Of a stretch of 64,000 nt of DNA, positions 3,491 to 23,197 are shown piece after piece. The stretch lies in the sequence record NC_048047.1; one strand, given 5' to 3'. Made by a program: the position numbers and the translations under genes. Each line of letters starts with the position of its first letter. Position 1 is the stretch's first letter. Under the pieces are notes generated by a model. That model did not search any database and was not told the origin of the DNA. It was given only the letters and a program-made list of their open reading frames with translations.

Positions 3491-3634
3491 AAGGACGCGC
3501 CCAGGCCTCCCCGGCCTGGGCGTTGCCCATTCACCAGGCGTTAAGGTTAACCGCGAAATTAGTGCGAGAAATCTGTTGACACGCATTGAGGCCCTATGCG
3601 AGAACAAAGCTCCACTTCATGAGGAGCGCCAAGC

Positions 3635-4291: not shown

Positions 4292-4443
4292 CCGCGAGCC
4301 CAGGCCTTCGCGCCTGGGCTTTGCCCCGCCCCCTGGGCGTTAAGGTTACCCGCGAAAATAGTGCAAGAAACCTGTTGACTCGCTTTGCCGCCCATGCGAG
4401 AACAGGGCTCAGACGAAACGACGAGACCACAAAGGAGGCCGCC

Positions 4444-4980: not shown

Positions 4981-5133
4981 TGACCACCGCCTGGGGTTAA
5001 CCTTAACGTCGCCTTAAGGTTAACCCGCCCAGGCCGGCGCCCAGGCGAAAAAGATTGCGAGAAACCTGTTGACACGCATGGAAGCCCTATGCGAGAACAG
5101 GGCACCAATTCAACGCCAGCCGGGAGACACCCC

Positions 5134-8100
5134 ATGGCCCTTGTCACCGAGTCCTTTGTCGTCGATATCGACTGCACCCGCGCCCTGACTGCCGCCGAGC
5201 GGCGAGGACTGGCCGGCGCCATCGCCCAGGTCCTGGGCGTCAATATTGATCGTGTCGAGCCCGAACCGGGCGGTTTCCTGACCGCCAATATCGGCCGCGT
5301 GCGCCCGGCCGGCATGGTCGGCGCCTCAGGTCAAGAGGCTCGGATCAAGACCGAGGCCCTGACCAGCCGCGACCATGACGCGCCCGTCGCCCTGACCCTG
5401 GAGGCTGGCGAGCGCGTCGATGTCATCGCCCGCTTCTACTGCATGGCCGATGCTGAGACCTATCTGAACGAAAACCCCGACATCGACCCGGTGTCGCTGA
5501 ACCTGGGCTGCTATGGCATTGACGCGCCGTTTGGCGTGGCCAGCGACGCGGACGGCGACAAGCTCCTCTATGAGCTGGGCTATCGCCTGCACGCCACGGG
5601 CGGCGGGTCGTGGTCCTTCACCGATCCGAAGGGCTATCTCTGGGACGGCGGCGGCAAGCGTGAGGCCGTGGTCATGATCGCCCTGAAACAAGCCGCCGAC
5701 GCCGAGGAGGCCTAAGACCATGACCGGTTACACGATCAAGCTCGAAGTTCAGGTCAACCCGGCTGACAGCCTGGAGCAGGCGCGCAAGGACGTCGAGACC
5801 GCCATTATCAAGGCCGATCTTCCGGCCTGGATGGAATGGATGATCATCGACGCCGCGCCCCTGGCGCCGGTGATCGCGCCGGCCACGCGCTGGGCGACCT
5901 TCGTCGGTCAGGCCTGGATCAACGGCCACACGATGGAAGTGGACGACAGCCGCGTGAGCTACGGTGTCACTGACGAGGAGTTTGACGAAAACGGCGGGGA
6001 CGAGCCGGCCGACTTCGACGCCCTGGCCCAGGCCGCCCGCGCTCCCGACTGGGTGCGCAACTGGTCAGGCCCCTTCGACATCTACATCTCGGACATTCCA
6101 GACGGGCAGGACCCGGATATTCCGGTTTTCGGCTAAGGGTGCAAGAAAGCTGTTGACAGCATAACAGCCCTATGCGAGAAAGGGTCATAGCAAGGAGACA
6201 CCGCTATGACCCCCAACCCGACCGAAGAGGGCAAGGCCGCCGCCCGCCAATGGCTGGCCAACTCGACCAGCGAATGGGCGCCCGAGCCCAAGAACCCCTA
6301 TCGCACCCTGGCCCGGTCGATGACCGCCCGCACCGACGAGGAACGCCGCTGGGACGCGGGCTATCAGCACATCCTCGACCTGGAATTCCCCGACGACGGC
6401 GCCGAGCAGCGCGCCGAACGCGCCTTTGGCTGCTAGAGAGGTCCGCCGGCTCACCCCGGCGGACTTTCCACCACCGCCCGGCGTTAACCTTAACGCCGCC
6501 TTAAGGTTACCCGCGAAAATAGTGCAAGAAAGCTGTTGACAGCATAGAGGCCCTATGCGAGAAAGGCTCATCGAAACGGGAGACACCCCATGGACGACAC
6601 CTATCCGCCCCTGACCCCCGGCCAGCAGGACGCCCTGGTCGCCTTCGCTGACCAGCATGGCGGCCTGGGCGAGGCCTGGAAGGAAGCCCTCGGCGACGCC
6701 TGGAGGACGTGCAGCGAGCCCGAGGCGCTCAAGGCCGACCTGCGGACCATCCGCAACACCTATGGCCCCTCCTGGCTCTATGATGAATACGCCTGGGGCT
6801 GGCGCCCGACCCTGCCGGCCTGGGAGCGCGCCGGGCGCTGGACCGACACCCCGCCCGAGCCGACGCCGGGCAAGGCCCGCTGGAGCGCCGCCTTCGACCC
6901 GCCGGCCATCGGCGAGCGCGTCCGGGTGACCACCAACGGCCTGGGCTGGGCCAAGGTCACCGGCTACTTCGTCGAAGGCGACTGGCTGGGCGTGATCGTC
7001 AAGCTGGAGGCCCCGGCCGACTGGTATGTCAAACAGAACGGCGGCAACGTCCCCGGCCACAGCTTCGGGACCGAGATCGCCCTGACCGACCCCGCGTGAC
7101 CTGGGCGGCCCTGGCTGGGAGACCAGCCGGGGCGACGCCTTGGCCGGCGCGGTTAACCTTAAGGCCGCGTTAAGGTTAACCGCCCGCGCCCTCCGCCCGG
7201 CGAAAGAAAATGCAAGAAAGCTGTTGACACGCATCCGAGACCTATGCGAGAAAGGCGCATCGAACAACGGAGGCCCTTCCATGGCCAAGCTTTTCAGCGA
7301 TCTCCAAGACCTTGCCACCTCGACCTATGTCGTGCGCATCGTCGACAATGGCGGCGAGAGCGCCGACCGTTACACGATCGTCACCGCCGATGGCGACTAT
7401 TACGCCTACAGCGCCAATCCCTCCCATCCCCAAGGCGTGGGCCTGAGCGGCGAGGGCATCGACCCGCAAGTTCTGGCCGACTGGGTAGAGCGCGGGCAGG
7501 CCATCGACCTGACCATCGGCGAACTACCCGAGGGCGCCGCCCGCTGCCTGCTGGCGTCGATCAACGCCAGCGTCGAGGACTTCCTGGCCGCTGTCCTGGA
7601 CCCGACGTCCAACGCCGTGGCCCCGACCCGCGAAAAGGCGGAGATCAACGAGGGCGTCATGGATTGCTTCGGCAAGGGCATCTATCGTGTCGGCGAGGGT
7701 TTCGCCGTGCGTATGGATGGCATGGACGCGGGCGATGATCGCGGACCGTTCATGACCGCTGTCGATGCGGTCAAGGCCACCCTCCCCGATGAATACGCCT
7801 GGGCGGGCGAGGAATACCTGTCGCCGCGCGACATGACCAAGGTCACGCCCGAAGCCAAGCCGCTCGTCTTGGTTCACGCCCTGGAGGCCATTCGCGACTA
7901 TGAATATCAGCGCGACACACCCGGCGCGTTTTTCGACGGCCTGCACAAGGACGACACTGACGCGGGCCTGGGCATCGTGCGCCGCACGCGCTACCTGTCC
8001 AAGGTCACCGGTGATGCGACCATCGTCGGGCTGATCGGCGAGGCGCCGGCTTTCGCCCTGGCCCATGCGTGCCTCGACCAACTGTGGACCCTGGCGCAAG

Positions 8101-8754
8101 AGCGTTGGGAGGCGGGCCAGTGAGCGCCCGCGAACGCCGCGCCCTCGCCGAACTGCTGGCCCTCTTCCATGCCGTCAATAGCGGCCATGTCAAGGGCCGC
8201 AACCCCTACGCCTTCCCGGCCGTCAAGCTCGCCAACGCGGCGTTGACGGGCGATCCGCTGGACGGGGGATTCCACGTCGCCGAAGCGCTGGACACCCTGC
8301 GCACGTCCGATGGCAAGGCGCTGCTATTCGACACCGAATTTCCCGAAGAAAGCGGTTGACAGCATAAGGGGCCTATGCGAGAAAGGGTCATCAACGGAGA
8401 CACCCCGCCCATGTGGACCGACAAGACGTTCAAGACCCGGACCGCCAAGGAGGCCTGGATCGCCCGCAACGAAGACCGCTATCAGATCGTCGAGATCGTG
8501 GTCTGCAACGCTTACGGCGTGTCCTACAAGCCCCTGCGACGCGTCTACTAGGAGACCCGCCCATGATCCCCGACTCGGTCCGCAACCCCAAGGACCACTG
8601 GACCCCCATCGCCACCCGCGCCGAGGCGGACGCCCTGGCCTTCCGCTACAACCAAGACGACGACGGCCCCGGCCTCTACGAGGTCCACGAAAAGGGCGCG
8701 ACCTTCGCCATCGCCTACTATGACGAAGACGGCGTGTTCTGCGCCTACGTCTAG
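5134..8754 (+). other. Run of early hypothetical genes
   Basis: CDSs at 5134-5715, 5720-6136, 6206-6436, 6590-7099, 7281-8123, 8120-8359, 8411-8551 (46 aa, hand-translated) and 8563-8754. Each has an SD and/or a promoter, and the CDSs tile tightly. Confidence 0.75.
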
Positions 8755-8943
8755 CCGTCACCTCGTCACCTTGAAGGCCGGCGCCGCTCTCCTGGCGCCG
8801 GCCTTTTCTTTGCGCCCGGCCGCCCGGTTAATCTTAAGGCGGCGTTAAGGTTAACCCGCCGCATCCCGCCCTGATGCAAAAAACCTGTTGACACGCATGG
8901 AAGCCCTATGCGAGAAAGACGACGAACACGGGAGACACCCCTT

Positions 8944-9948
8944 ATGACCACCGCCACCATCGCCGGCGCCGAACACACGATGATCGGACAAGCCGCCTAC
9001 CGCTCCACCCAGCGCCCGCATCAAGTGCAGGACATGGCCTATGGCGCGTTCCCGGCCGCCACGTCGGACTCGCCCTTCGCCGTCAAGCCTGCCTGCGGCA
9101 AGACCCCGAGCGCGCGCGTGCTGGAGGACTTCGACCCCGCCGACGTCTTCACCATCAAGCCGCGTGATCGCGGCGACGGCTTCCTTGCGGTCGCCAACTT
9201 CGGCGGCTCTGAGGTGTCGTGGATCAGCGTCGCCGGCTATGGCGACACCGAAGACGCCGCGCGCGCCAACCTCATGGCCAAGTTCATCGACGATCGCGAC
9301 GGCAAGAGCAAGTTTGGCCCCCATGAGCCGCTCAAGGGCTATGACTGGTCCTATAAGCTGGCGCCCTATTGGGACATGCTGGAGCGCGAGGCCGCCATTC
9401 GCCAGCCCTTCAAGCGCACGCTCTACCTGGGCAAGCTGAAGTCGGGCCGCCCCAATCCCAAGGGCTTTGACGTGTTCGTCGATGTCGAATGGACCGGCGA
9501 GCGCCTGAGTCTGTCGGGCGTCATCGGCCCCAAGGCCAATGGCAACGCCTGGGGCGGCTGTGGTCAGATCGTCGGCAGTCTTGCGCGCAAGGACTTTCTG
9601 GAGTTCGCCCCGTCCTGGCATTATGGCTCGGCCCTTGACGGTCTGGTCAAGGCCTGGACCCGCTGGCACCTGAACGACATGCGCGCCGGCACGCCTCGCC
9701 AGCAAGAACACCTGCGAGGCTATCAGGCCAAGCGCAACATTGAGCAGGCCAAGGCCGCCGGCGCCCACCATCTCGACGCCACCCGCGCCGAACTGGCGCG
9801 CGTCCATCTGGAGCCCGACACCTGGGAGCGCCGCAACGGCCGGCCCTATAGCTACGGCTCCGCATGGTTGCGCGAGGAGGTCCCCACCTTCGTTCTCGAC
9901 TTCCTGCGCAATCTCCCCGCCCCCGTCAAAACCAGCCCCTGGAGGTAA
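8944..9948 (+). CDS. Early hypothetical protein, 334 aa
   Basis: Promoter at 8888, SD GGAGA, ATG 8944. Confidence 0.8.
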   Translation: MTTATIAGAEHTMIGQAAYRSTQRPHQVQDMAYGAFPAATSDSPFAVKPACGKTPSARVLEDFDPADVFTIKPRDRGDGFLAVANFGGSEVSWISVAGYGDTEDAARANLMAKFIDDRDGKSKFGPHEPLKGYDWSYKLAPYWDMLEREAAIRQPFKRTLYLGKLKSGRPNPKGFDVFVDVEWTGERLSLSGVIGPKANGNAWGGCGQIVGSLARKDFLEFAPSWHYGSALDGLVKAWTRWHLNDMRAGTPRQQEHLRGYQAKRNIEQAKAAGAHHLDATRAELARVHLEPDTWERRNGRPYSYGSAWLREEVPTFVLDFLRNLPAPVKTSPWR

Positions 9949-9955
9949 CCCGCCC

Positions 9956-10390
9956 ATGGCCATCAACACCGCCGGCCTCGTCGGCAAGCTCAAGGAAGCC
10001 CTGGCCAGCGCGCCGAACCTGACCCTTTGGGCCAAGGAACGCGGCCTCTTCCACCAGAACGTTTCGGCCGCCGCGCGCGGCGACACCGTGCCGCAAGACA
10101 GCATCGCCAAGGCCCTGGGCTATCGGCGCGTCCACGTCCAAGCCTATCTGGCGCCCGGCGAGGCCCTGCCGCTTCTGCCGCCCGGCTGGGAGGAAGTGGT
10201 TCCGGGCTCGGCGACCCCGGTCGACTGGAAGCCGCGCGACAAGACCGCCGAGCCGGCTCATCGCCGCGTTGGCTCGCCTGAGCAAATGGCGCGCGCCCGC
10301 TCGCTTCGCCGGCAGGAAGACCCCGAGGCCGTGGCGGCGGTGCAGGAAGCCCTTGCCGACGCCAAGGCCAAGCTGCGAAAAACCGGTTGA
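9956..10390 (+). CDS. Cro/XRE-like helix-turn-helix DNA-binding protein
   Basis: SD GGAGG. The N-terminus NLTLWAKERGLFHQNVSAAARGDTVPQDSIAKALGY fits the small phage Cro-like HTH pattern. Confidence 0.55.
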   Translation: MAINTAGLVGKLKEALASAPNLTLWAKERGLFHQNVSAAARGDTVPQDSIAKALGYRRVHVQAYLAPGEALPLLPPGWEEVVPGSATPVDWKPRDKTAEPAHRRVGSPEQMARARSLRRQEDPEAVAAVQEALADAKAKLRKTG

Positions 10391-10441
10391 CAGCATAAGG
10401 CGGCTATGCGAGAAAGGCTCATCACTTTCTGGAGCAAGCCC

Positions 10442-12988
10442 ATGGCCGCCTTCCTGATCAACACCGATCTCAACGCCCTGGTCGAGGACATCGCCTATGA
10501 CGTCGAGATGGAAGACCGCGCCGCCGAGGAACTCGATGGCATGGACTTTGGCGACCGCTGCTATTACGGCGACCGCGCCTATCATGGCCAGCTTGAGCTT
10601 GCCCGGATCATCGAAGCGGCCACCGCCGCCCATCCCATCCTGTACGCCTAGCAGAGGAGGCGCCGCTTGACCCGTTACCGCACCGACTACAGCCAAGACG
10701 ACGGCAAGACCGTCATTATCGAGGAAGGCCTGACCCGGACCGAGGCCATGCAAAAGGCCGCGATCCTGTCGCGCAAGCACGGGACCGCCTACGCCGTCGC
10801 CTCCGACGACAAGGGCCGCGACACTGGCCAAAGGGTCTATGCTGACGGCCGGTTCAGCTACCAAGACGACAAGTTCTAAGGCAAGAGGCCCGGAGCGATC
10901 CGGGCCTCTTGTCTGTCCCGAGCCGCCCGTTAACCTTAACCCCCTGGGACGGGGCGTTAACCGAACAATCTGCAAGAAACCTGTTGACACGCATCTGAGG
11001 CCTATGCGAGAAAGGCTCATCGAACAACGGAGGACGTCATGTCCAAAACGTCTATTGATCCTGTGATCGCCCAAGCCCTCGCCGAACTGCGCCAAGGCCC
11101 GGTCATGGTCGATCATGGCCCCCAAGACCGCACCCAAGTCGTGAGCTTCGGCGCGACCCAAGCCCGGATGGCCAATGTCGCCCTCACGATCGAACAAGCC
11201 CTGTCGCAAAGCCCCGCGCCCTACGCCCTGGGCTGGTTGCTGGTCACTGAATATGACCGCCTGGGCGACAATTGGGGTGGCTTTCTGGGCGGCCCTCTCG
11301 ATGAGGGGCAAACCCTCAAGGACGCTGACGAGGTGCTGGCGTGGTTCCGCGCCACCTTCCCCGAGGACCCGGAAGGCTTTGCCGGGCAGATGGCCGGCGC
11401 CCTGCCCAATGACGAGACCCGCGCCAAGATCGAAGCCGGCTACGCCGAGGCCCTGGCCATCAAGGACACGGTCGCGCCCCTGGCCAATATCGGTTCGGCC
11501 GAGGCGGTCGCCGACATGATGTCCACCATGTTCGGCTCTGCTGTCAACGCTGCTCAGGCCCTGGGCTATCTCGTCACCACCCTGGGCGCGGGCCGCTTCG
11601 GCGTCACCCATGACGACGGCGCCACCCTGGCCACGCGCCTGGAAATCGACCACCCGACCCAAGAGGCCGCCGCCCGCGCCGCCCTGGTCTACCATGTCCA
11701 GCACCTGCAAGCCGACACCCTGGCGCTGGCCAATCTGAAGGACTGACCATGACCGCCGCCGCCTCTCTCTTCGAACAAGCCCAGATCGAAGCCGCGCAAG
11801 CCGCGATCGATCTCAACACCGCCAAGGTCGGGCTGGAAACCGAGGACTCCAGCCCTGGAACCGACCTCTTCCACCTGCTGGGCTCGCTGCTGACCTGGGC
11901 GGACGCCTGGGGCGTGGACTTCGACGACATCCTGTCTCAGGTCCGCGAGCCGGTGAACGTCACCACGACCCTGACCCGCAATGATCCGGCGACCTATGGC
12001 CAAGATCAGCGGTTCGCCGCCATCCTGGCCAATCTCGACCAGCGCAATACCCCTTCCGTGCCGGTCCTGACCCGTGATGAGGCCGAAACCGAGGCCATGC
12101 GCGATCTCGCCGCCGTGGTCGGCAAGGTGATCAAGGTCCACGACATCACCGGCTATTTCGGCGAGACGGGCCAAGAGGACTTGCGCCCCCATGAAGGCGC
12201 GCCGGCCTTTTCGGTGATCGTCCTGCCGTCTGAGCGCGGCGATGTCATCCACTGGAATGACGAGCATCTGGACGTGCGCTGGAACGTCACCCCCGCGCCG
12301 GGCGAAACCCGCCTCTATGAACTGCGCTCGCTGTGGGTGTTTGGGCGCGGCTACGTCGTCGAGAAGGAGGGCTAAGGCATGGCCATGCCCCTGGGCTTGC
12401 GGACCACCGCCACGAGCTACGCCATCGACGTGGATGATGACCAGTTCCTGGCCATGATCCAGGCCGAGAGCTACAAGGGCGGCGACTTCGAACCGACCCT
12501 GTTCGACAAGCTGCAAAAGACCGACGCCCGCGACATCGAGTATAACGGCCACTTCGGCGCGTCCGTCTATTTCACCCTCAACGAGGAGGACGACACGCCC
12601 GCCCTCCGCGCCGAACTCGCCCGGCTGATCGCCGAACACCTCACCCTCTGTGTCGCCCACATGGCGACCTACGACAAGGACGCGCCCGATGCTGACTGAG
12701 GCCTCCATTCGTCTCGCCCCGTCCGACCTGCAAACGACCTTCGTCGTGGTCGGCAAGGTGCATCTGCATTTCTTCCTGACCACCCTGGTGGGCTTTCGCT
12801 GTCCGCGCCTGGGCGCGGTGCGCAACCCCGAGGGCCACAACGCCGGCGCCCGCGCCAAGGCCCATCTCCAGGCCCTGGGCTACTACGCCGAGGGCACGGG
12901 TAAAACCGCCACCGAAGAAGACTTTCAGCGCCTCGCCATGGCCGCGCTCGCCGGCTCCAGTGGTCCTGACTATCTCCTGTTGAGATAA
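10442..12988 (+). other. Run of early hypothetical genes
   Basis: CDSs at 10442-10651, 10667-10879, 11039-11746, 11749-12375, 12379-12699 and 12689-12988; promoters at 10387 and 10984. Confidence 0.75.
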
Positions 12989-13104
12989 GACCGCCTCCCA
13001 CGTCTAGGGCTGTCACGAATCCCCCCATCTATGACAGCCCAGACGCCCGTTTAGTCTTCCCTGTACTCTATTGCGCCAGTATCGGCGCGGAAAGTGATGC
13101 GCCT

Positions 13105-13167
13105 ATGAAGCTCCTCGAAGGTGGCGGACTGCTGGCCCTGTGCTTCCTTTTCTGGCTCCTCCACTGA
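13105..13167 (+). CDS. 20-aa hydrophobic micropeptide MKLLEGGGLLALCFLFWLLH, copy 1
   Basis: The identical peptide is encoded at 16757-16819 despite 12 nucleotide differences, none of which changes the peptide. Confidence 0.8.
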   Translation: MKLLEGGGLLALCFLFWLLH

Positions 13168-13231
13168 CAAGGCTGTTGACAGCATAAAGGCACTATGCGA
13201 AAAGGGGTCATCGCCACCGGAGACACCCGCG

Positions 13232-13498
13232 ATGACCGAATATGACGACTACGGCCAAGACGCCTATTTCGACCACCTCCACGATCAGGCCGTCGATGAG
13301 GCTTTCGAGCGCCACGCCGACGACGCCTATGAGGACGACCTAGGCGACGAGGACCCCGACCTCGAAATCCCCGATGAGGAAGACGAGGAGGAGGGCCTTC
13401 GCCGGGCCGAAGGGCTCATGCCCTGGGCGACCCCCGAAGGCGTCGAGCCTGGGCAGTTCCCGCGCCGGGCCTATGACGACGACGAAATCCCGTTCTGA
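13232..13498 (+). CDS. Highly acidic 88-aa protein ending in an SSB-tail-like YDDDEIPF
   Basis: Promoter at 13176, SD GGAGA; 33 of 88 residues are D/E. Confidence 0.8.
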   Translation: MTEYDDYGQDAYFDHLHDQAVDEAFERHADDAYEDDLGDEDPDLEIPDEEDEEEGLRRAEGLMPWATPEGVEPGQFPRRAYDDDEIPF

Positions 13499-13704
13499 TC
13501 TCCTCCCTTCGAAAGGCCCCGCGCGGGCCTTTCTTTTTGCCCCGCGCCTGGGGTTAACCTTAAGGCGGCGTTAAGGTTAACCCGGACCATTTTTCGTCTT
13601 TTGTGTCGGGCCATTTTTCGCTTTTCGTGTCGAGGTGCAAGAAAGCTGTTGACAGCATAAAAGCCCTATGCGAGAAAGGCTCATCGCAACCAAGGAGCCC
13701 GACC

Positions 13705-15467
13705 ATGGGTCTCAAGATCGAAATCGACACCGGCAACGACGCCTTTCAGGGTGTGGCCGGCGAGCACTGCGCCAGCCTCCTGCATGAGGTGGCCCGCAAG
13801 CTCGACCAAGGCGCCCGCGCCGGCAATATCTACGACGGCAACGGCAACAAGGTCGGGACCTACGAACTCGACCACACCGACGCCCCGGAGTCGTAAGCCA
13901 TGGCCTATTTCGACGTCATCACCACGGTGCGCGTTGAGGTCGAGGACATCCCCGATCTCTTCGCCGCCGCCCTGGCGCGCGCGGTCAAGGACGGCATGGA
14001 AGAGGGCGACGCCCGCGACCTGCTGACCAACTCCGACCCCCTGGGCCGCCCCGACATCAAGTCGTGCCTGATCATGCTGTTTGATCCGGGCGTGAGCCCG
14101 GACGGCACGTCGATCAGCGGCACGGAAGTCCAGCGCCCCGACATGGACGAAGACGACGCCATGGACGCCTACGAGGACGCCCACGGCGAAGACGAGGAAG
14201 GCGACGGCGATGACGAGGACTAAGGGCAAGTCGCGCGTTCCCCAACGCCTGCTGATCGCCAGTCGGCCGACCCTGGTCGCCGGCCCCTCGCCAGCCACCC
14301 GCCGCCACTGGTGGGACCTTCTGGACAGCGCGGGCCACCCGCGCGACCTTGAGGCCCTGCTGGTCGTCACCATCGACCAAGACGCGGCCGAAACCGTCGT
14401 CGCGGTCCTGCCGCTCGCCGCCGCCGACTACAGCGAAGAAGCCGTCAAGGCTGACGCCCTGGTCGCCGCCCACACCCGCCCCCGCAGCCCTGGCAAGCGC
14501 GACGCGCTCAACGCCTATGTGCTGCATGTCAATGACCCCCATGCGGAGCATCAACCGTGAGCTATTCCGGCCCGATCACCATTTCGCAAGGCCTGCGCTG
14601 GCGCCTCGATAGCTACGGCAACGGCGCGGCCTATGCCTTCTATGACCTGTCGGCCGGCGCCAGCGTCTGGCTTGAAGGCGACGACGCCACCACGTTCCGC
14701 GACGACTACGACAACGCCGAAAAGCGCCGGCCGCAAGACGAGCCTGACGAGATTATGGGCCATCTGTGGCATGATCACGAATACGGCGCCGCCGCCAAGG
14801 TCCGGGCCGTCACCGTGCGCCGGATCATCCGCGAAGACACCGTGATCCTGTTGCGCCCCGGCGAGAGCGAGGCCGACGCCAAGGAACGGGCGATCTTCAA
14901 TCAATCCTCGCTCAAGTGGGACACCTACGATTGCGAGTATAGCGCCGACGCCGCCGAGGACGCCCCCGCCGAGGAATACGCCTATCTGCTGACCGGCCAC
15001 CCCTGCGCCATCTAAGCCAAGGCCCGCCCCTCCCTTCAGGCAAGGAAGGCGGCGGGCCTTGCCCTGGGCGATCGCGGTTAACCTTAACGTGCAAGAAATC
15101 TGTTGACACGCATTGAGGCCATATGCGAGAAAGGACCACCGCAACGGGAGAGACCCCCATGACTGCCCAAGCCGTTCTGACCGCCCGCCTTGACCGCGCC
15201 GTCGCCGTGATCTCTGGCGACATCCCCAAGAGCCGGCGCAAGGTGCGCAAGGCCCGCCGCGCCTTCCAGCGCGCCCTGGAAGGGATGGACATCCCGACCT
15301 ATGTGGCGTGGATCAACCACCCCGACTCGTTCATCGCCCTCACCGACGATGTCGAGCACTGGGCGCAAAGCGGGATCACCACCGCCGCCCAACTGGGCGC
15401 CTATCTCGACGGCTGCGCCCGCCATGAGGCCCGCAAGGACTTGATGAGCGGCTACCTCGACGACTAG
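13705..15467 (+). other. Run of early hypothetical genes
   Basis: CDSs at 13705-13896, 13900-14223 (acidic C-terminus), 14210-14560, 14557-15015 and 15159-15467. Confidence 0.7.
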
Positions 15468-15561
15468 GCGGCAAAAAGGCCCGTCCCCTGGTGGGGCGGG
15501 CCTTGTCCTGTCCGATCGGGATTAACCTTAACGCGAGATTAAGGTTAACGCAGCCTTAAGG

Positions 15562-15804
15562 TTAAGTGGCGTTCTTGCGCGTCGTGGCCTGGGGATTGGC
15601 CTTCAACCATGCGTCGGCTTCCGTCCGGGTCGAGAACGGCGCCCCGCCAATGCCCTGCGTCCCGTCGTCCCATTGGATGGTCCAACCCACGTTCTTGATT
15701 TCCCAATCTTCGGCCACGCCGTGGGGGATCGGGGCGTGTACGCCAATACGGGTAAACGGCGCCCGCTTCAGTTGACGGACACGCGCCGGGATCACTTGCG
15801 GCAT
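15562..15804 (-). CDS. Hypothetical protein, 80 aa; the only inverted gene in the early array
   Basis: Minus-strand SD AGGA; minus-strand TTTCTTGACAC at 15879-15889; the stop codon lies inside the TTAA palindrome arm. Confidence 0.6.
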   Translation of the reverse strand: MPQVIPARVRQLKRAPFTRIGVHAPIPHGVAEDWEIKNVGWTIQWDDGTQGIGGAPFSTRTEADAWLKANPQATTRKNAT

Positions 15805-15985
15805 TTCAGGGATTTCCTATTGACAAAGGCCTTGCCCCATGGGCGGCCCGAAAGGCGACTGTATCAAGCGGCGCCGCCGTGTCAAGAAACGCGACACAGA
15901 CTGAGAAAGCGGTTGACACGCATCTAAGCCCTATGCGAGAAAGATCAGGCACGGCGCACCCCCGCGCCCCTGGGAGACACCCCGC

Positions 15986-16756
15986 ATGGACCTGACCACG
16001 TTTTCGGCCTCGGCTGAATTTGTTCTCTGCAACAAGCCGGTGAAGATCACCGTCAAGCCCGCCGGCCGACCGCTCTACCTGTCGTTTTCCATCGAACAGA
16101 TCGGCATGATCGGCGGTAGCGACGAATTGATGAGCGAGGCCGAACAACACGACGTTGAGGACTTGGTGACGGTCTTGACCATCGCCGACGTCCTGTCCCT
16201 CAAGCCCATCGAGACCTATAACGACGAAGACCGCGACGCCGTCGAGAGCGTGCGCTATGCGCTGATCATGCTCAACGGCGAGCGCTACGCTTCGGCCGTC
16301 GCGTTCGAGGATGTCGGCGAGGCCGATTTTTCCAATCGCGACGACACCATTGACACCCGCCAAATCGTCGAGCGGGTCGAGGTGCTTCGGAGCGCCCTGG
16401 AGACGGCCGGCGTCGAGACCGGCGACCTCGCCGCCCTGGAAGCCCTCGACGAAGAAGAGGCCGTGACGGACCAAGACCAGCGCGAGACCTTCAACGAGAT
16501 TCGCGAGGAATATCTGATCCTGGCGCGCATGGTCGAGGAGGGCGCCAACTACGGCGAGGATTGGACGTTCGGCGCCACCCTGGTCCGCGAATCCTACTTC
16601 ACCGAGTTCGCGCAAGAAGAGTGCGAAAGCCTGGGCTACATCGCCAAGGACTTCCCGTCGTGGATTTCCATCGACTGGGAAAAGACCGCCAACACGATGA
16701 AATCCGACTATACCGAAATCGACTTTGACGGCGTGAGCTACTACGTTCGCGCCTAG
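15986..16756 (+). CDS. Acidic ArdA-like antirestriction (DNA mimic) protein
   Basis: The C-terminus FTEFAQEECESLGYI...ISIDWEKTANTMKSDYTEIDFDGVSYY matches the ArdA C-terminal pattern; the protein is very acidic. Confidence 0.6.
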   Translation: MDLTTFSASAEFVLCNKPVKITVKPAGRPLYLSFSIEQIGMIGGSDELMSEAEQHDVEDLVTVLTIADVLSLKPIETYNDEDRDAVESVRYALIMLNGERYASAVAFEDVGEADFSNRDDTIDTRQIVERVEVLRSALETAGVETGDLAALEALDEEEAVTDQDQRETFNEIREEYLILARMVEEGANYGEDWTFGATLVRESYFTEFAQEECESLGYIAKDFPSWISIDWEKTANTMKSDYTEIDFDGVSYYVRA

Positions 16757-16819
16757 GTGAAGCTCCTCGAAGGCGGCGGCCTGCTCGCGCTCTGCTTCCT
16801 CTTCTGGTTGCTTCATTAA
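16757..16819 (+). CDS. 20-aa hydrophobic micropeptide, copy 2 (GTG start)
   Basis: Abuts the TAG of the ArdA-like gene in frame; same peptide as 13105-13167. Confidence 0.75.
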   Translation: MKLLEGGGLLALCFLFWLLH

Positions 16820-17131
16820 CCCCGGCCGGCGTCCATGACCTGGGCGCCGGCCTTTTCTTTGCGCCGCGATCGGGGTTAACCTTAAGGCGGCGTTAAGGTT
16901 AACGGCGGGCCTGGGAGGAAAGGCGTCAAGGCCGCGAGCTAGGATTACACGCGATGGCTTAGCCGGCGTCCAGCCGGCGGCGCCTTCGACCACCGCGAGG
17001 CGGCCTTGACCCTCGTAATCTCGCCGACCCGTCGCCCGGTGTCAACCGTTTTCTTTCTCCAAGAATTCTGTTGACACGCATCGAAGCCCTATGCGAGAAA
17101 GGGTCATCTTCAACGCCTGGAAAGAAAATCC

Positions 17132-17788
17132 ATGCCCCGCACCGTCACCAAACAGGTCTTCACGTTCAAGGAGTTGAACGACAAGGCCAAGGCCAAGGCT
17201 ATCGAGTGGTATCGCGGCCTCAACGACCAAGACTCCGGTTGGTGGGAGTTCGTCTATGACGAAGCCGACCGCATCGCCGACGCCTTCGGGATCACCCTGC
17301 GCCGCAAGGAAGCCGGCAAGCCCAATAGCGGCCCGGACATCATGTTCACCGGCTTCTGGAGTCAAGGCGACGGCGCCTGTTTCCAAGGTCGCTACGAGTC
17401 GCCCCAAACCCCGGCCGTCGAAGCCTTCGCCGCCCTGGGAATCGAAGACGACACGCTCAAGGCTCTGGCCGCCCGTCTGGACGCTCTGAGCGCCAAGGTT
17501 CGCCTGATCACCACGGTCAAGCACTCTGGCCACTACTACCACGAGTATTGCACCGACTTCGAAACCGAACGCATGGTTCCCGACGAAGCCGGCGACGCCT
17601 TCGACCCTTACGACTTCGAGCACGAAGACGAAAAGGAACTGATCGACATTCTGCGCACCTTCATGAAGTGGATTTATCGCCAGCTTGAAGTCGTCGAGGA
17701 AGACCGCAATTCCGACGAAACGATCAGCGAATATCTGACCGACTCTGATTACGAGTTCGAGGCGGACGGCTCGCCGACCAACGACTAA
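17132..17788 (+). CDS. Conserved acidic early phage protein (VFTFKELNDKAKAKAIEWY...GFWSQGDGACF family)
   Basis: Promoter at 17071. I recognise this as a recurring phage hypothetical family; function unknown. Confidence 0.8.
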   Translation: MPRTVTKQVFTFKELNDKAKAKAIEWYRGLNDQDSGWWEFVYDEADRIADAFGITLRRKEAGKPNSGPDIMFTGFWSQGDGACFQGRYESPQTPAVEAFAALGIEDDTLKALAARLDALSAKVRLITTVKHSGHYYHEYCTDFETERMVPDEAGDAFDPYDFEHEDEKELIDILRTFMKWIYRQLEVVEEDRNSDETISEYLTDSDYEFEADGSPTND

Positions 17789-17960
17789 GCCAAGCCCGCC
17801 GCGCCCGGCCTTTTCGCCGGGCGCGTGTCGGGTTTTGGTTTTCCAAGGTCTTGTTAAGGTTAACGAAAAAAGCCCTCCAGCGACCTGAGAAACTGCAAGA
17901 AAAATGTTGACTGCATCCAAGCCCTATGCGAGAAAGGCTCATCGCAACGGGAGACACCCC

Positions 17961-19832
17961 ATGACGACCCCGACCAAGAAGCGCCGCAAGCGCTACCCGC
18001 CCAAGAGCGACGCGGCTAAGGCTCGCGCCGCCGCCAAGAGCAAGGCGTTCTTCGCCAAGCACGCGCTCAAGGCCACCGAGGCCACGATCGCCGCCATGAA
18101 GGCCGGCGACCAAAAGGCCGTCCAACGCCACGCCAAGGACGCCCGGCGCCTGAACCGCTGGATGATCCACAAGCGCGACATCGCCGCCGCCTTCGCGGCC
18201 CTTTTCGACCTGCGCGCCGCGCGCCTCGCCCTGGAGCTTGCCGCATGACCCGTCGCCCTGCCTATCTGACCGTCCTGGGCGGTATCGGCCTCATCCTCGC
18301 CAGCCTCGCGCTTTCGGCCGCCAGCGCCCCGGAAAAGCGGGTTCTCGTGGGTCAATACTGCGACGGCGACCTTGTGCGCCTCTACGGCCTGGAAGACGGC
18401 GAGGAAGCGGCCGAGGCCTGCGCCATCGTCGAAGTCCACGCCCTGCCCAAGGGCCTTTGACCATGGAACGCCTCAACGTTCACGTGCTGACCATCACCTA
18501 TGACAGCGGCAACCCCGTCCCGCCGTTTGTCGCTCTGGCCATGTCCAAGGAGGAGCTTGACGACAACCTGCAAGCCAAGGCGCGCGAGGAAGTCGAAAAC
18601 CTCTATTTCGAGGAAGACGACCTCTTTGACGACCTCGCCAAGGTCCTGACCGCCGAACGCGTCGCCGAGCTTCAGCCCCTGGGCCTGGACGCCATCGGCC
18701 TCCTGACCCCGGTCGAAGTCGTCACCATGGCCAAGCAATTTGCGTCGATCACGCCAAGCTTTGACGTGCTTCCGCTCTACCTCGAATCGACCCCGACCTG
18801 ACGCAAGAAAGCTGTTGACAGCATAATTCGCCTATGCGAGAAATGACTGTCAACGGCGATTCCCGCCGCATGGAGACACCCATGAAGCTGATCAAACACG
18901 ACGTTCTCGACCACGGCCGCGCCTCGACCCTGCGCAACGCCCTGGGCACGGCCCTGGAACGATACGCCGAAATCGCCAAGGACTTCGAAGGCTACGCCAT
19001 CGAATACGCGGCCCTGGACGAGGCGGGCAAGCAAGCCTGGAAGGCCACCAATAGCTGGATCAATCCGCGCGCCCTGCCGGACCTGAAAAAGCAATTCGAG
19101 CGCCAAGTCACCGAGGTGCAAGACCTCATCGACTGGCTGGACGGCGACAAATTCCAAGACGAAAACGGTCAATACCCGGAAAACACCGAGTTCACCGTCG
19201 TCGCCGGCCTGATCCGCGACTTCTAAACGCCCTGGCCAAGGCCCGCCCTCACGGCGGGCCTTTTCCTTGACCCCGCGCCGCTGTTAACCTTAACGTGCAA
19301 ACGTTCGCCGATTAACCTTAACGAGACATGTCCGTTCCGTTAACCCTGTCGTGCAAAAAAGCTGTTGACTCGCATCCAAGCCCTATGCGAGAAAAGGCCA
19401 TCAGCAACGGGAATGACCCCCATGACCAAACCCGAAATGACCCCGGAAGAACGTCGAGCCCAGCTTGACGACATGCTCAAAATCTGGCGCGAGCGCGTCG
19501 AGACCGCCAAGCAACGCCTGTCGATCAACGTCCTGGTCGGCCGAGGCTTCCTCTGCGTCCTGGAGCGCGAGCCCAGCGGCATGGCCATCGGCCCGACCGA
19601 GGATGACAAGGGCTGGCGCCTTGTGGCCATGAACCCCTGGTTCACCGGCTGCGTCAAATGGGCCAAGGCCGACGCCGAACAAGTCGCCGCGCACTGGAAC
19701 GCCAACCTCACCGGCGACGCGGCCCTCTACTGCGTGGTCAAGGTCATGCACTATCGCGCCGTCCTCGAAGAGATGGTCACCAAAGGCGAGGAGATGATCG
19801 CCTTCATGGAAGACCGCTATAAGGCCGCCTGA
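17961..19832 (+). other. Run of early hypothetical genes
   Basis: CDSs at 17961-18248 (basic), 18245-18460 (signal/TM N-terminus), 18463-18801, 18882-19226 and 19422-19832. Confidence 0.75.
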
Positions 19833-20020
19833 TCTTGACGCCCTCCGGCTCCGGCCGGAGGGTTAATTTTTGGTCGACCCGGCGTCAAGGTTAACGCGCT
19901 CCAGCCTGGGGTTAACCTTAACCCGCAACCGTTTGCACGTTAACCATTTGGCGCAAGAAACCTGTTGACACGCATTTCTGTCCTATGCGAAAAGAGGCCA
20001 TCCAATCAACGGAGGCCCGC

Positions 20021-20677
20021 ATGGCCAGCCCTGAAGATATCGCCATCGTCCAAGCCGCGCCGGTCAGTTTCGACCTCGAAGCGTGGGAGGAAGAAAACGG
20101 CCAATATGCCCAAGACCACTGGCGCCACCTCAACTACGCCTTTGAGATCAAGGGCTATAAGCACATGTTCACGCAAGATCAGCGCGCCGCCGCCGATCGC
20201 CTGATCGCCGAATATGAGGAAGCCCAAGACGACCACCGCGAAACCTACCGCGCCGAAAGCGACGCCGTTTTCTGGGCGGCCGACGCCTTCGCTCGCCAGT
20301 ACATCGGCACGGCGCTCTGGACGGGCGTTAGCTACCCCATGGGCGATGATCGCGGCGGAAGCGACAGCTACTATGACGGCGAATCGGCCTGGATCACGCC
20401 CAAGACCCTGCGCGAGATGATCGAAGATTGCGACGCCTTCCAGCGCGACAACGTCGCCGCCCTGGCCAAGGCCTATGCGTCTGACGTCTGGATCGAAGGC
20501 GAGCGCTACAACGCCAGCAACGCCGGTCACGATTTTTGGTTGACCCGCAACGGTCACGGCGTCGGCTTTTGGGATCGTGGCCTAGGCGAGGTCGGCGAGA
20601 CCCTTTCCGAAGCCGCCCGCAAGGTCGGAGAATACAGCCTAGCCCTTGACGACAACGGCGAAATCAGCCGCATGTAA
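20021..20677 (+). CDS. Conserved early phage protein with AGHDFWLTRNGHGVGFWDR motif
   Basis: Promoter at 19965, SD GGAGG; a recognisable recurring phage motif of unknown function. Confidence 0.8.
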   Translation: MASPEDIAIVQAAPVSFDLEAWEEENGQYAQDHWRHLNYAFEIKGYKHMFTQDQRAAADRLIAEYEEAQDDHRETYRAESDAVFWAADAFARQYIGTALWTGVSYPMGDDRGGSDSYYDGESAWITPKTLREMIEDCDAFQRDNVAALAKAYASDVWIEGERYNASNAGHDFWLTRNGHGVGFWDRGLGEVGETLSEAARKVGEYSLALDDNGEISRM

Positions 20678-20839
20678 CCCCGGCAAAGGCCCGCTTGACA
20701 GCGGGCCTTTTTCGTGCCTGCGCCTGGGGTTAACCTTAACGCCACCCCGCTCCGCCTTAACGCTCTTTTCTGCAAGAAAACAGTTGACTCGCATCCGCGC
20801 CCCATGCGAGAAAAGGTCATCAACCACGGAGCGCGGCAC

Positions 20840-22589
20840 ATGGCCAAGCAAGAACAACTTGAAATCGCCCTGGTCCTGCTGGACGAGCACAAGGCCAAGA
20901 TCGGCGCCCCTCGCGCCTTCACCTACGGCGAAGTCATCGAGGCGTACCGCGACGCGGGCGCCCTGATCAGCGCCGAGGTCCGCTTGCAGCGGATCGCCGA
21001 AAACGAGTGCAACGGCTACCGCGACGAGACGGCCGAAAAGCTCGATGAGCGCCGCCGTCAGACCCTCGAAGCCAAGGCCGGCGAAATCGCCAAGCGCTAC
21101 GGCGTGGCCCTGACGTTCGGCGGCGACCCGCGCGGATCGGCCCTCAAGATCAAGACCCCGCACACGGGCCGTTACAACGGCTTTGGCGGGCGTGAGGATG
21201 GATGGGCCGTCTAGGCCCATTCTGACCCCTTCCACCCCTGTAGCGCGTCCCCTCTCAACCCCTGGCCCTAGGAGACACCCCATGGCCCGCACGACCATCC
21301 ACACCCGCACCGACAAGGCCAATCGCGAGGCGCTGACCCCGTGGGAATATGAGCGCCAGCACCGCGCCGACAAGAAAGCCGCCAAGTCCTGGCGCACCGA
21401 TCGCCAAGGCCGCCGCGCCCTGGCCTCTTCGGACGCCTTCAAGGCCCACTAAATCGGCCTCGAAAAAAGTTCGGCTCGATGCGAGAAACCTGTTGACTCG
21501 CATCGAGCCCCTATGCCATAAAGGGTCATCAAACGGAGACACCGACATGACCCACTTCCAACGCGCCACCGAAGACCAAGTCACCGTCGCCCACCACACC
21601 GTTTCGGGCGGTGAACTGACCGTCACCACCCGCCCCCTGGCCCGCCCGGTCTACCGCCTGAACGGCTTCAAGATCAGCGCCGCCGACGCCGCCCGCAAGC
21701 TGGCCGCCTAAGACCCCTCCCCTAGAAGGCCCCCTCCCTGGAGCGGGGCCTTTTTCGTGGCCGTTAGGCAGGCGTTAGGGTTAACCGGTAGGGTGAATTC
21801 GTTAACCTTAATGGGGCGTTAAGGTTAACCCAGCCAGCCCAGGCTGTTAACCATGTAGGCGAAGAAAGTGCGATCTCGTGTAAGAAAGCTGTTGACTGCA
21901 TAAGAGCCATATGCGACAAAGGGTCATCAGCAACGGAGCTACCCGATGTCCTTCCGCCTTTCCCTCACTGACGAAGCCCGTTTCACCGCCGCGCGCGGCG
22001 CCGTTCGCACCGTCCGGGAACAGGCCCGCCCTGAGCCGGCCAAGGACGGTTCGGGCAAGTACGTCCTGGCCTCGCAAGACGCCCTGTCGCGCATCCGCGC
22101 CGTGCTGGGCAACTAAGCCATGAAGGTCACGGCGCACTATGGCAACGGGCTCTCGCGGGTCATCCCCTGCGAGACGCGAGAGGCCGCCCTGGACGCGATC
22201 AAGGCCGCGTTGCGCTATGATCGCTCGGCGACCTTCACGGTTGACAAGCGGATCACCCAAGGCGCGCCGACCCGCGCGGCCTCCGAACGGGTTTGGCTGC
22301 TGTAGAAGAAAAAAGCGAGTCGACGCAAAAAAGCTGTTGACTCGCATAAGGCCCATATGCGATAAAAGGTCCTCAGCAACGGAGACACCCGATGACCTTC
22401 CACCACAACATGATGAGCAAGCTGGACGCGGCCCAACAGTCGGGCGAACTGTCCTATGCCCAGCACGCCGACATGCGCGCCACCCTGCGCGCGGCGAACA
22501 TGCGCGGTGAAGTGTTCACGTCGATGAACGAACTGCGCAAGGCCTGCAAGGGCGCTGGCCGCGACTATCAAGGCCGCTTCGCCAACTAA
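20840..22589 (+). other. Last run of small early genes
   Basis: CDSs at 20840-21214 (GDPRG motif), 21282-21452, 21547-21711, 21946-22116 (56 aa, hand-translated), 22120-22305 and 22392-22589. Confidence 0.75.
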
Positions 22590-22699
22590 GGCGGCCCAAG
22601 ACCTCCCAAGCCCTAAGACCCTAGGCCCGCCCTTCGAGGCGGGCCTTTTGCTGTCTGCCGTCCGGGGAGGCTCCAAGGCCGGGGGCGGCCGGGGACGGT

Positions 22700-23190
22700 A
22701 AATAAGAAGGTTCCAAGAAAGTATGGCCCTACCGGAAGGGGTCCAGGGACCCAAGGCCGGGGTCTGTTGCATTTCTGCCACAGGCCCCTCAGGCGCCTAG
22801 GAATCACATTGAATTTTTCATATACCAAGGGTCGTCCAAAATCAAAGACCCGTTTTCCGCCCAGGCAAACCCGTTTCACAGGGCTAAGTGTCTGAAAAAT
22901 TTTATAAAAAATTCCGGCGCAGGGAAAGGGGTCCCCTATTTTCCGGTGGGGAATTTTTCTCAGAAACGACCTATGTCTGAAAAATTTTTATAAAAAACTA
23001 TAAGTTGCATTTCACCTATAGGTTGTAAATCCGGTCATCCCTGGCCGGATTGCCGGCCAAATCCGGCCATCAATCGGACATGGGGCGATGTCCAGCAATT
23101 TACACCGCCTCAATCATTTCAAGGGCTTAGACTAAAAGCTGGACATTTGCCGGACATCAACCGGCCAAATCCGGCCAAACGGAACCCGAA
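22700..23190. repeat. AT-rich non-coding boundary with local repeats
   Basis: GTCTGAAAAATTTT(T)ATAAAAA at 22890 and 22975; CCGGCCAAATCCGGCCA twice (about 23053 and 23161); GGGACCC at 22746 and on the minus strand at 22929-22935. Confidence 0.8.
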
Positions 23191-23197
23191 CCGGCCA

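Follow-up and report, generated by a model that had tools for sequence, protein, structure and literature searches.

The palindromes that recur in the window analysed here, the leading 64 kb (64,000 nucleotides) of the genome of Caulobacter phage CcrBL9, are probably extended CtrA sites, possibly used together with the CtrA partner SciP, within a regulatory module that is repeated along the direct terminal repeat (DTR). As judged from sequence, each module runs from a stop codon and a terminator hairpin through about 20 bp to one to three units of the form TTARGGTTAAC(C), followed after 15–70 bp (once 168 bp) by a near-identical, host-type early promoter. Where two units are spaced by 7 bp, a canonical TTAA-N7-TTAA CtrA box is formed between them, and the outer GGTTAAC(C) resembles the known extended half-site TTAACCAT.

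Palindromes, units and the terminal repeat

A search for TTAACCTTAA-N7-TTAAGGTTAA with up to three mismatches retrieved nine matches, starting at 4997, 6484, 7153, 8828, 13554, 15522, 15539, 16876 and 21802. Six of the nine are exact, and no match was found in 100 dinucleotide-preserving shuffles. The repeated palindromes of a preliminary description, which had counted eight, are therefore genuine. Their arms, extending to 11–14 bp, were recovered at the lengths given there, and so were the spacers, three reading forward (CGTCGCC, CGCCGCC and CGCAGCC) and five reversed (GGCCGCG, GGCGGCG three times and TGGGGCG). The repeated entity is a 10–12-mer, TTARGGTTAAC(C), present in about 40 copies; the 10-mer arm alone, allowing one mismatch, was observed 40 times against 0.17 expected. 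Units occur singly, as inverted or direct N7 pairs (direct, for example, at 15539) and in a direct array at 2302–2517, and spacings of 13, 16, 26–28 or 37 bp are also found in the array and elsewhere. Exact copies of TTAACCAT lie at 492, 2319, 19940 and 21847. The features are as follows.

1–22260, unstranded: left DTR of CcrBL9, annotated in MH588546/NC_048047; bases 1–22000 100% identical
523–532, minus: single unit before gp002; TTAACCAT 31 bp upstream (492)
2302–2517, plus: direct array of about 10 units within a 1455-bp gene-free gap (1463–2917)
3541–3552, plus: single unit, gp005 promoter; -35 is 25 bp downstream
4340–4349, plus: single unit with one mismatch, gp006 promoter; -35 is 25 bp downstream
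4997–5023, unstranded: palindrome, gp007 promoter; spacer CGTCGCC, 45 bp to -35
5057–5100, plus: early promoter, one of 23 conserved copies, GCAAGAAA-N-CTG-TTGACA...CCTATGCGAGAAA; units upstream of the module
6484–6510, unstranded: palindrome with one mismatch, gp010 promoter; spacer CGCCGCC, 25 bp to -35
7153–7179, unstranded: palindrome with 14-bp arms, gp011 promoter; spacer GGCCGCG, 44 bp to -35
8828–8854, unstranded: palindrome with one mismatch, gp015 promoter; spacer GGCGGCG, 33 bp to -35
10930–10962, minus: single unit and a TTAACC half-site 27 bp on, before the gp019 promoter
13554–13580, unstranded: palindrome; spacer GGCGGCG, exact reverse complement in the CcrSC orthologue
15076–15087, minus: single unit, gp028 promoter; 15 bp to -35
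15522–15565, unstranded: three N7-spaced units (orientations -, +, +) between the gp028 terminator and the minus-strand gp029 stop codon
16876–16902, unstranded: palindrome, gp032 promoter 168 bp downstream; spacer GGCGGCG, inverted relative to the CcrSC orthologue at 6/7 bases
17854–17863, plus: single unit, gp033 promoter; 43 bp to -35
19284–19345, minus: two direct units 28 bp apart and a TTAACC half-site, before the gp037 promoter
19885–19947, unstranded: two units 27 bp apart and TTAACCAT, before the gp038 promoter
20728–20760, minus: single unit and TTAA 27 bp on, before the gp039 promoter
21775–21828, unstranded: degenerate unit, then palindrome 21802–21828, before the gp042 promoter; spacer TGGGGCG, TTAACCAT at 21847

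A high density of the motif is found in the DTR and nowhere else in the CcrBL9 genome. The DTR contains 79 copies of TTAA and the 141.7 kb examined beyond it contain 48, and TTAA-N7-TTAA boxes number ten in the DTR and zero in those 141.7 kb. The 12 exact palindromes of the whole 322-kb genome correspond to six DTR sites in both repeat copies. All nine palindrome matches are intergenic and fall inside the DTR, and every copy of the 10-mer except one, at 61600, lies within the terminal repeat. Units are likewise intergenic, apart from the copies at 15556 and 61600 (the latter outside the DTR), each of which overlaps a stop codon. The unit in its roughly 40 copies, its confinement to the DTR and the promoterless cluster at 15522–15565 had been overlooked in the preliminary description.

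Module layout and conservation

Every cassette is equipped with a promoter and a terminator of its own. The early promoters are present in 23 near-identical copies with a consensus -35 (TTGACA), and the units lie upstream of the -35. TTAA units occur within 130 bp upstream in 14 of the 23, while the remaining nine have no unit in the 130 bp checked. Units start about 50 bp past the upstream stop codon, directly beyond a terminator-like hairpin, and the actual terminators lie about 20 bp upstream of the palindromes. The distance from the stop codon to the unit is tighter than that from unit to promoter, being 47–57 bp at 11 of the 16 sites that lie past the gene-free gap. From the right arm to the -35 we measured 25 to 168 bp, in agreement with the earlier estimate of about 25–170 bp. 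Counted from the -35 hexamer, the positions of TTAA cluster at about -25/-27, -47/-48 and -53/-54; the helical-phasing statistic for units is inflated because the modules are paralogous.

Placement between terminator and promoter, as first described, generally holds, except for the cluster at 15522–15565, which is bordered by the ends of two converging genes and adjoins no promoter. With units at 14 of 23 promoters and one promoterless cluster, the proposed gating of every cassette is too strong. This cluster is kept in CcrSC (16326) and RB23 (18380). The array at 2302–2517 is flanked by TTGACG..CATTTC repeats on the left and by A-tract repeats on the right, and the same gap-array arrangement is found in CcrBL10 and phiCbK.

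Between CcrBL9 and CcrSC, 158 of 160 arm positions are identical, as against 34 of 56 spacer positions and 55–78% of the flanks. At two orthologous sites the spacers are inverted between these phages. Irrespective of orientation, the N7 distance between units is kept in CcrBL9, CcrSC and RB23 as well as in metagenomic phages. In RB23, the inner variants CTAA and TTAG are those of natural CtrA sites such as fliQ and hemE.

CtrA boxes in phages and cells

That the DTRs of phiCbK-like phages carry CtrA sites is already published as a prediction. In CcrBL9, one of the phages in which CtrA sites are unevenly distributed, 32 sites are predicted; they cluster in the DTR, and most are intergenic (Mascolo et al. 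2022, PMC9437464). For the CcrSC orthologues of the palindromes, Table S6 of that study lists the inner boxes, which score 9.6–13.6 (PMC9437464). In phiCbK, CtrA~P binds canonical boxes of the DTR and two promoters are CtrA-dependent (PMC9437464); electrophoretic mobility shift assays and lacZ fusions showed that CtrA binds and regulates gp005 and gp018 (Mascolo et al. 2022, PMC9437464). CtrA binding has been demonstrated for phiCbK gp005 and gp018 and for two unrelated phages.

The boxes of Mascolo et al. 2022 (PMC9437464) and the units described here share the phage group, a data set that includes CcrBL9, clustering in the DTR, intergenic position and the TTAA-N7-TTAA core, and the CcrSC orthologues are listed there. 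However, that study dealt with 17-bp boxes and did not describe the 10–12-mer, the 27–31-bp palindrome, the arrays or the link with terminators. In addition, the tested phiCbK boxes overlap the -35, whereas the CcrBL9 units lie upstream of a consensus TTGACA (Mascolo et al. 2022, PMC9437464).

The palindromes hold two TTAA half-sites 7 bp apart, in intergenic or promoter DNA of a phage whose host, Caulobacter vibrioides CB15, bears CtrA; for the weight matrix we relied on the published scan (CcrSC scores of 9.6–13.6; 32 sites in CcrBL9). The outer part of the arm matches a further known element. SciP ChIP-seq gave the motif (G/A)TTAACCAT(A/G), which corresponds to an extended form of the CtrA half-site (Fumeaux et al. 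2014, PMC4083442), and the phage arm GTTAACC(T/C)TA matches TTAACCAT at 9 of 10 positions (PMC4083442). Position 8 of the arm differs, being T or C and not A, and use by SciP there is a prediction.

Identical sequences in cells provide new support for the CtrA reading, again by sequence match. Among 185,579 species genomes, the exact 27-mer had 18 matches, nine of them in Methylopila or Hansschlegelia. In eight of these nine loci it lies 55–57 bp upstream of a flagellin ATG; for the ninth (L037), the flagellin gene is not within the sequence retrieved. Plain TTAA-N7-TTAR boxes stand at the equivalent position of paralogous flagellin genes. In cells, the element is found at genes of the conserved CtrA regulon. 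In a Rhodobacterales genome, a further match precedes a luxI gene by 71 bp. The CtrA-box reading put forward in the preliminary description is supported by the TTAA-N7-TTAA core, the restriction to the DTR and the published predictions.

Several features run counter to it. The phiCbK sites with experimental validation overlap the -35 as plain boxes and are not palindromes upstream of it, and the inner boxes are flanked by CC/GG where G/C is preferred, giving moderate scores only. Unit spacings of 13, 16, 26–28 and 37 bp are unexplained by a simple dimer on TTAA-N7-TTAA. The position of the units is also more constant relative to the upstream stop codon than relative to the promoter, the cluster at 15522 is promoterless and 9 of 23 promoters are unit-free. 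The exact 27-mer, moreover, was found in none of the Caulobacter genomes of the collection.

Alternative readings and predicted effect

TTARGGTTAAC(C) might instead be read mainly by a protein other than CtrA, such as SciP, another host OmpR-family regulator or a conserved protein of phiCbK-like phages, the CtrA box between units being incidental. The conserved entity is indeed the 10–12-mer and not the N7 box, RB23 having four canonical boxes versus 45 units and 66 GGTTAAC cores. Direct arrays use spacings other than N7, single units are placed where other promoters have palindromes, and the reported SciP motif is near the arm sequence. Nevertheless, we consider a different main binder unlikely. 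A DNA-binding domain was recognisable in none of the 40 DTR proteins tested, and a phage-made factor would not be present until the first early genes had been read. The 27-mer and the plain CtrA boxes of paralogues at flagellin promoters of non-host bacteria point to a conserved cellular factor. Scanning these phages with a SciP matrix, which may differ from the ChIP motif, showed no positional skew.

Inverted arms of about 11–13 bp around a spacer of 6–8 bp are also the geometry of tyrosine-recombinase sites, which the 11–14-bp arms and 7-bp asymmetric spacer share. As previously described, no recombinase is encoded in the window. The proposed search elsewhere in the genome did find one, gp482 (155,823–156,551), a candidate enzyme only, with a PF00589 match (E = 3e-16) and conserved HxxR and H..Y motifs; absence of an enzyme is therefore no argument against recombination. 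The palindromes would then be core sites of gp482, serving as integron-like cassette borders or in Cre/lox-like circularisation via the left and right repeats. CcrBL9 and RB23 differ in the order of their cassettes, and at one junction the homology changes partner no more than about 16 bp from the 4997 palindrome. Every palindrome recurs identically in the other copy of the repeat, and persistence as a circular episome is known in relatives.

Variable and flipping spacers, breakpoints elsewhere, half-units and the flagellin 27-mers nevertheless leave this second proposal of the preliminary description unsupported; it is a weak reading and, in our judgement, very improbable. Within one repeat, partner sites lack identical spacers (3/9 only), such identity holding only for the left/right twins, and CcrBL9 sites and their CcrSC orthologues can carry the spacer in opposite orientations. 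Positions equivalent to those of palindromes are elsewhere taken by single units and direct N7 pairs. The suggested comparison of cassette breakpoints among relatives placed the resolvable ones away from the palindromes, none falling in a spacer. Of three recent duplications in BL47, one was resolved to the nucleotide and had its crossover inside a promoter, between -35 and -10; another went via paralogous genes and the third was of a two-gene unit, neither with a TTARGGTTAAC(C) unit at its borders. Gene replacements between CcrBL9 and CcrSC stop at ORF borders, inside the inter-unit interval, and leave the adjoining promoter and terminator untouched. The CcrBL9/RB23 junctions are old. The recombinase is kept in phiCbK, CcrPW, Lacusarx, Cp1R7A-A1 and Brevundimonas phages, in the repeats of which palindromes of this kind are scarce or absent, and a search beside the recombinase gene found no matching palindrome. 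The same 27-mer, moreover, stands at cellular flagellin promoters.

LoxP/Cre of P1 and integron attC likewise have inverted arms around a 6–8-bp asymmetric spacer, and P1 is terminally redundant and can exist as a plasmid. Its loxP site, however, is single, and attC sites are 57–141 bp long, form imperfect palindromes with extrahelical bases and come after cassettes that lack promoters; the CcrBL9 palindromes, which recur at many promoters, share none of these traits. An integron attC assignment was rejected given their length of 27–31 bp, perfect arms, a promoter and terminator for each cassette and a recombinase at least 130 kb away. PeSL modules of T4-type phages, reportedly described by Arbiol et al. 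in 2010, are said to flank small early genes and to be substrates of homologous recombination for cassette shuffling or duplication. The repeated modules described here are alike in this, the BL47 promoter crossover being an example, whereas PeSL modules are not known to carry a site for a host transcription factor.

Finally, a role as a nucleic-acid structure (a back-up hairpin behind the terminator, or a cruciform for replication or packaging) is extremely unlikely. In its favour, the predicted hairpins are stable (-13.6 to -21.1 kcal/mol, z-scores -3.2 to -5.1), the sites lie at a constant distance just beyond terminators and spacer flips suggest hairpin or template-switch events. Against it, no U-run follows the hairpins, partnerless single units occupy equivalent positions, little transcription is expected across sites downstream of strong terminators, an Rfam search gave no match, and arm conservation is of sequence and not of pairing (in RB23 each arm varies independently of the other, leaving four C-A mismatches, four G-T pairs and only one compensated pair). 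The palindromes were also rejected as intrinsic terminators, their stems being A+T-rich and no T-run following.

Read as extended CtrA sites, the units resemble the pilA promoter and Cori of C. crescentus, where several CtrA sites or half-sites occur per region, some degenerate (CTAA, TTAG), and spacing affects output. The host sites differ in being irregular and palindromic only at TTAA, whereas the phage units are near-identical. As with the Spo0A boxes of Bacillus phage phi29, the phage would use a developmental master regulator of its host to time early transcription, although regulator, host and site architecture differ. Since the CcrBL9 promoters have a consensus -35 with the units upstream of it, the predicted effect of CtrA on them is more likely to be modulation than an on/off requirement.

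The repeated unit in the terminal repeat

Bases 1-22000 of the window are 100% identical to the start of CcrBL9 (MH588546 / NC_048047), a phage of 322,272 bp classified in Bertelyvirus (Dolichocephalovirinae) whose host is Caulobacter vibrioides CB15. The left copy of its terminal repeat (DTR) is annotated in the record as 1-22260 and contains ~43 small genes, almost all on the plus strand. According to Pfam, gp001 (49-420) is a Terminase_6C fragment, representing the C-terminal part of the large terminase and a duplicated 3' gene end. The terminal repeat therefore has its start within this gene, in the 3' end; in the related phage BL47, the full large terminase gene runs into the right repeat. 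Gp001 gave the only Pfam match among 40 DTR proteins, no candidate DNA-binding protein was retrieved in the repeat, and Rfam searches over 1-24000 gave no match. Between gp002 and gp003, positions 1188-1273 hold 3.7 copies of a 23-bp repeat containing GGGACCCTGG. Right after the repeat boundary, a gene-free stretch of 608 bp (22590-23197) with A+T-rich repeats (gtctgaaaaatttt..ataaaaaa, twice) lies between the early genes on the plus strand and a long block on the minus strand.

Searches with TTAACCTTAA-N7-TTAAGGTTAA, allowing up to three mismatches, retrieved nine matches, compared with none in 100 shuffles, and confirmed the palindromes of the preliminary description in position, arm length and spacer orientation. 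These palindromes are only part of a wider pattern built from the unit TTARGGTTAAC(C), which consists of the palindromic core GGTTAACC and a second TTAA 6 bp away. The unit is arranged in several ways:

Single units: 3541, 4340, 10930, 15078, 17854 and 20730
Inverted pairs with a 7-bp spacer: the palindromes of the preliminary description
Direct pairs with a 7-bp spacer: 15539; also present in the phages CcrSC and RB23 and in metagenomic phages
Direct repeats: units 26-28 bp apart, plus an array of ~10 at 2302-2517

The 10-mer palindrome arm occurs 40 times with up to one mismatch (0.17 expected). All copies but one lie inside the terminal repeat, and all are intergenic except those at 15556 and, outside the repeat, 61600, both of which overlap a stop codon. 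The latter (61600-61611), with no other unit beyond the repeat, is in the block of structural genes, and the stop codon concerned is that of gp131. TTAA is found 79 times in the repeat, 62 of them in a TTAACC context, while the following 141.7 kb of the genome contain 48 TTAA and no TTAA-N7-TTAA. The 12 exact palindromes of the whole genome correspond to six DTR sites in both repeat copies, and counting the two repeats there are ~80 unit copies per genome. The unit is common to at least four genera of phiCbK-like phages, lower-GC metagenomic phages and cellular flagellin promoters. In full-text searches with the 10-mer or the GGTTAACC core, no description of the extended motif in connection with CtrA or phages was found.

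Promoters, flagellin genes and the CtrA reading

There are 23 near-identical early promoters of ~44 bp (TTGACA ... CCTATGCGAGAAA) between 3576 and 22380, such as that at 5057-5100. TTAA units are located within 130 bp upstream of 14 of them; the nine unit-less promoters are mostly in short spacers inside operons. Unit clusters are directly preceded by a G+C-rich terminator hairpin, and 11 of the 16 clusters downstream of the gene-free gap at 1463-2917 begin 47-57 bp past the upstream stop codon. The cluster at 15522-15565 lies between convergent gene ends without a promoter. The nearest unit and the -35 are most commonly separated by 43-45 bp, and otherwise by 15, 25, 33-37, 52, 63-72 or 168 bp, with TTAA starts peaking at -25/-27, -47/-48 and -53/-54 relative to the -35 hexamer. 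A Rayleigh test for 10-bp phasing of this gap was significant, but as paralogous copies the modules are not independent, and the result is given little weight. A scan for E. coli-type promoters did not detect the phage promoters, as their -10 is not TATAAT-like. Since the conservation of the 23 early promoters is far above what a sigma-70-type promoter needs, a second factor may bind them. These promoters contain TGCRAGAAA at two places, one upstream of the -35 and the other in the -10/start region. Outside the repeat, TGACAC-N6-TTAACCATG occurs twice (36543-36563 and 58632-58652) and ATGGTTAA once (46597); these sites may mark another promoter class using a CtrA half-site.

In the Bertelyvirus phages CcrBL9, CcrSC, RB23 and BL47, the -35 is a consensus TTGACA with units upstream, whereas in phiCbK, CcrBL10 and CcrPW the early promoters themselves bear a box at the -35 (TTTAC-N7-TTAA), and an 11-bp spacing predominates. 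Between CcrBL9 and CcrSC, palindrome arms are identical at 158/160 positions, spacers at 34/56 and flanks at 55-78%. Many inner half-sites of RB23 are CTAA or TTAG, with the outer GGTTAA invariant; host CtrA sites, for example at fliQ and hemE, normally include such degenerate halves. One to five copies each are also present in eight more phage contigs from metagenomes, the G+C content of some being as low as 48-58%, again directly behind terminator-like hairpins. In the contigs of a lower-GC phage family (L013, L018, L023, L025 and L035), the palindrome lies within a longer conserved module, in which a terminator hairpin (its stem containing TTAACCATG) is followed by a T-run, ~12 bp, the palindrome, N7 and TTAAC.

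The exact 27-mer pattern (Y/R allowed at two positions) retrieved 18 matches in a scan of one genome each of 185,579 species, none of them in Caulobacter. Half of these matches (9/18) belong to Methylopila and Hansschlegelia, with 67-69% G+C, and have identical arms and different spacers. Eight of the nine are located 55-57 bp upstream of a flagellin start codon, the gene of the ninth being outside the stretch examined (L037). Neighbouring paralogous flagellin genes carry plain TTAA-N7-TTAR boxes or 10-mer-N7-TTAA at the equal upstream position. A further match, in Thalassovita, precedes a luxI gene by 71 bp. Flagellar and quorum-sensing genes form the CtrA regulon conserved outside Caulobacter. 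The flagellin and luxI occurrences, the best new evidence obtained here, point to recognition of the whole 27-mer by a conserved cellular factor.

Among the readings considered, CtrA boxes, one of the two proposals of the preliminary description, are best supported, as predicted sites for this host cell-cycle regulator. Mascolo et al. (2022) screened 499 phage genomes using a CtrA matrix and found that, in phiCbK-like phages including CcrBL9, high-scoring intergenic CtrA sites are concentrated in the terminal repeats (PMC9437464). Their tables list 32 predicted CtrA sites for CcrBL9 and, in the sister phage CcrSC, the inner boxes of the orthologous palindromes (e.g. CTTAAGGCCGCGTTAAG), with scores of 9.6-13.6 (PMC9437464). 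In EMSA, CtrA~P bound boxes preceding phiCbK gp005 and gp018, and the activity of the two promoters was lost in a strain with temperature-sensitive ctrA (PMC9437464). The longer unit and the palindrome are absent from that description (PMC9437464). Less probably, the unit is bound by a protein other than CtrA: the arm is close to the ChIP motif of SciP, CtrA's partner, and a CtrA dimer on an N7 box does not explain the spacings of 13, 16 and 26-28 bp.

Cassette turnover and spacer inversion

The second proposal was that the palindromes are recombination sites, either attC-like cassette boundaries or targets of a tyrosine recombinase. Such a recombinase was found elsewhere in the genome: gp482 (155,823-156,551; L055:41823-42551, a separate stretch of CcrBL9) has 242 aa, matches PF00589 (E = 3e-16) and contains HxxR and H..Y. 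It is short, with the catalytic domain only. Gp482 is conserved in all phiCbK-like phages, namely those of Caulobacter, Brevundimonas, Sphingobium, Mesorhizobium and Erythrobacter, including phages with few palindromes. Searches for inverted repeats beside the recombinase gene found none resembling the palindrome.

Cassettes do move, as CcrBL9 and RB23 differ in gene order. At one junction between these phages, homology switches within ~16 bp of the palindrome at 4997, which says little because every terminator-promoter spacer carries units; the old rearrangement junctions can be placed no finer than the intergenic module. Three gene replacements between CcrBL9 and CcrSC (4487/4952, 15133/15471 and 5719/6468) have their ends at ORF borders or shortly before a unit, and in the first two the promoter and terminator flanking units are unaltered. 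BL47 and RB23 are 98-99% identical, and the repeat of BL47 is 4.7 kb longer owing to three tandem duplications:

Duplication 1: 454-bp two-gene unit, without the motif nearby
Duplication 2: 1.5-kb unit, crossover between the -35 and -10 of a promoter
Duplication 3: 885-bp three-gene cassette in five copies, amplified through two paralogous genes

Thus, where breakpoints are better resolved (the CcrSC replacements and the BL47 duplications), crossovers are not at units. This settles that, in the resolvable cases, cassettes were shuffled and amplified through homologous recombination of the repeated regulatory modules or of paralogous genes, and that site-specific exchange at palindromes was not involved.

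Spacers differ between palindromes. At two sites, the CcrBL9 spacer is the reverse complement of that of CcrSC with unchanged flanks: 13554-13580 (7/7 positions; CcrSC 14271) and 16876-16902 (6/7; CcrSC 17680). The spacer direction attributed to the palindromes is hence not maintained, and such inversion is characteristic of flipping through hairpins or template switching. The recombination reading is not supported. Cre/lox-like circularisation between the twin sites of the two repeat copies is conceivable, though improbable; a single site would suffice for it, without one at each promoter. It is unlikely that the palindromes function as hairpins: no U-run follows the sites, single units occupy equivalent places, compensatory arm changes are lacking apart from one pair in RB23, and the two arms vary independently in RB23, so base pairing is not the conserved property.

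The gene-free gap and the biology of Bertelyvirus

The gap at 1463-2917 (1455 bp) contains no genes and has three successive repeat blocks:

2092-2289: TTGACG..CATTTC repeats
2302-2517: ~10 direct TTARGGTTAAC units
2523-2581: 10-bp A-tract repeats

CcrBL10 has the first two blocks in the same order, phiCbK has the unit array, and all genera retain a small unit array in a large gene-free gap beside TTGACG..CATTTC repeats. Relatives have recently been reported to persist or replicate as episomes, and the authors suggest a host-recognised origin in the genome. As speculation, the gap with its unit array is a candidate origin or control region. A dispersed centromere was also considered and is unsupported: in the part of the genome covered, Pfam detected no ParA or ParB in eight proteins encoded close to the recombinase and the replication genes. 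We regard as rather improbable the fuller proposal that the functional element is the 11-12-bp unit instead of the CtrA box, with copies that, beyond tuning promoters, would form a composite CtrA-SciP operator or a CtrA-titrating sink and, together with the gap, would control episome replication. The parallel proposed for the unit copies and the gap is the host origin, where replication is controlled by CtrA.

The crowding of CtrA boxes in the terminal repeat of CcrBL9 is already in the literature and therefore of low novelty. The additions made here are incremental: the actual repeated unit, its link to terminators, the parallel with flagellin promoters and the explanation of cassette turnover by homologous recombination. 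For experiments on giant Bertelyvirus phages, possible guides are a unit larger than the CtrA box, its fixed distance behind terminators and the 27-mer at Hyphomicrobiales flagellin promoters. If CtrA binds, CcrBL9 would read the cell-cycle state of its host at most early transcription units, which fits the published idea of 'lytic deferment' for phages that infect swarmer cells only.
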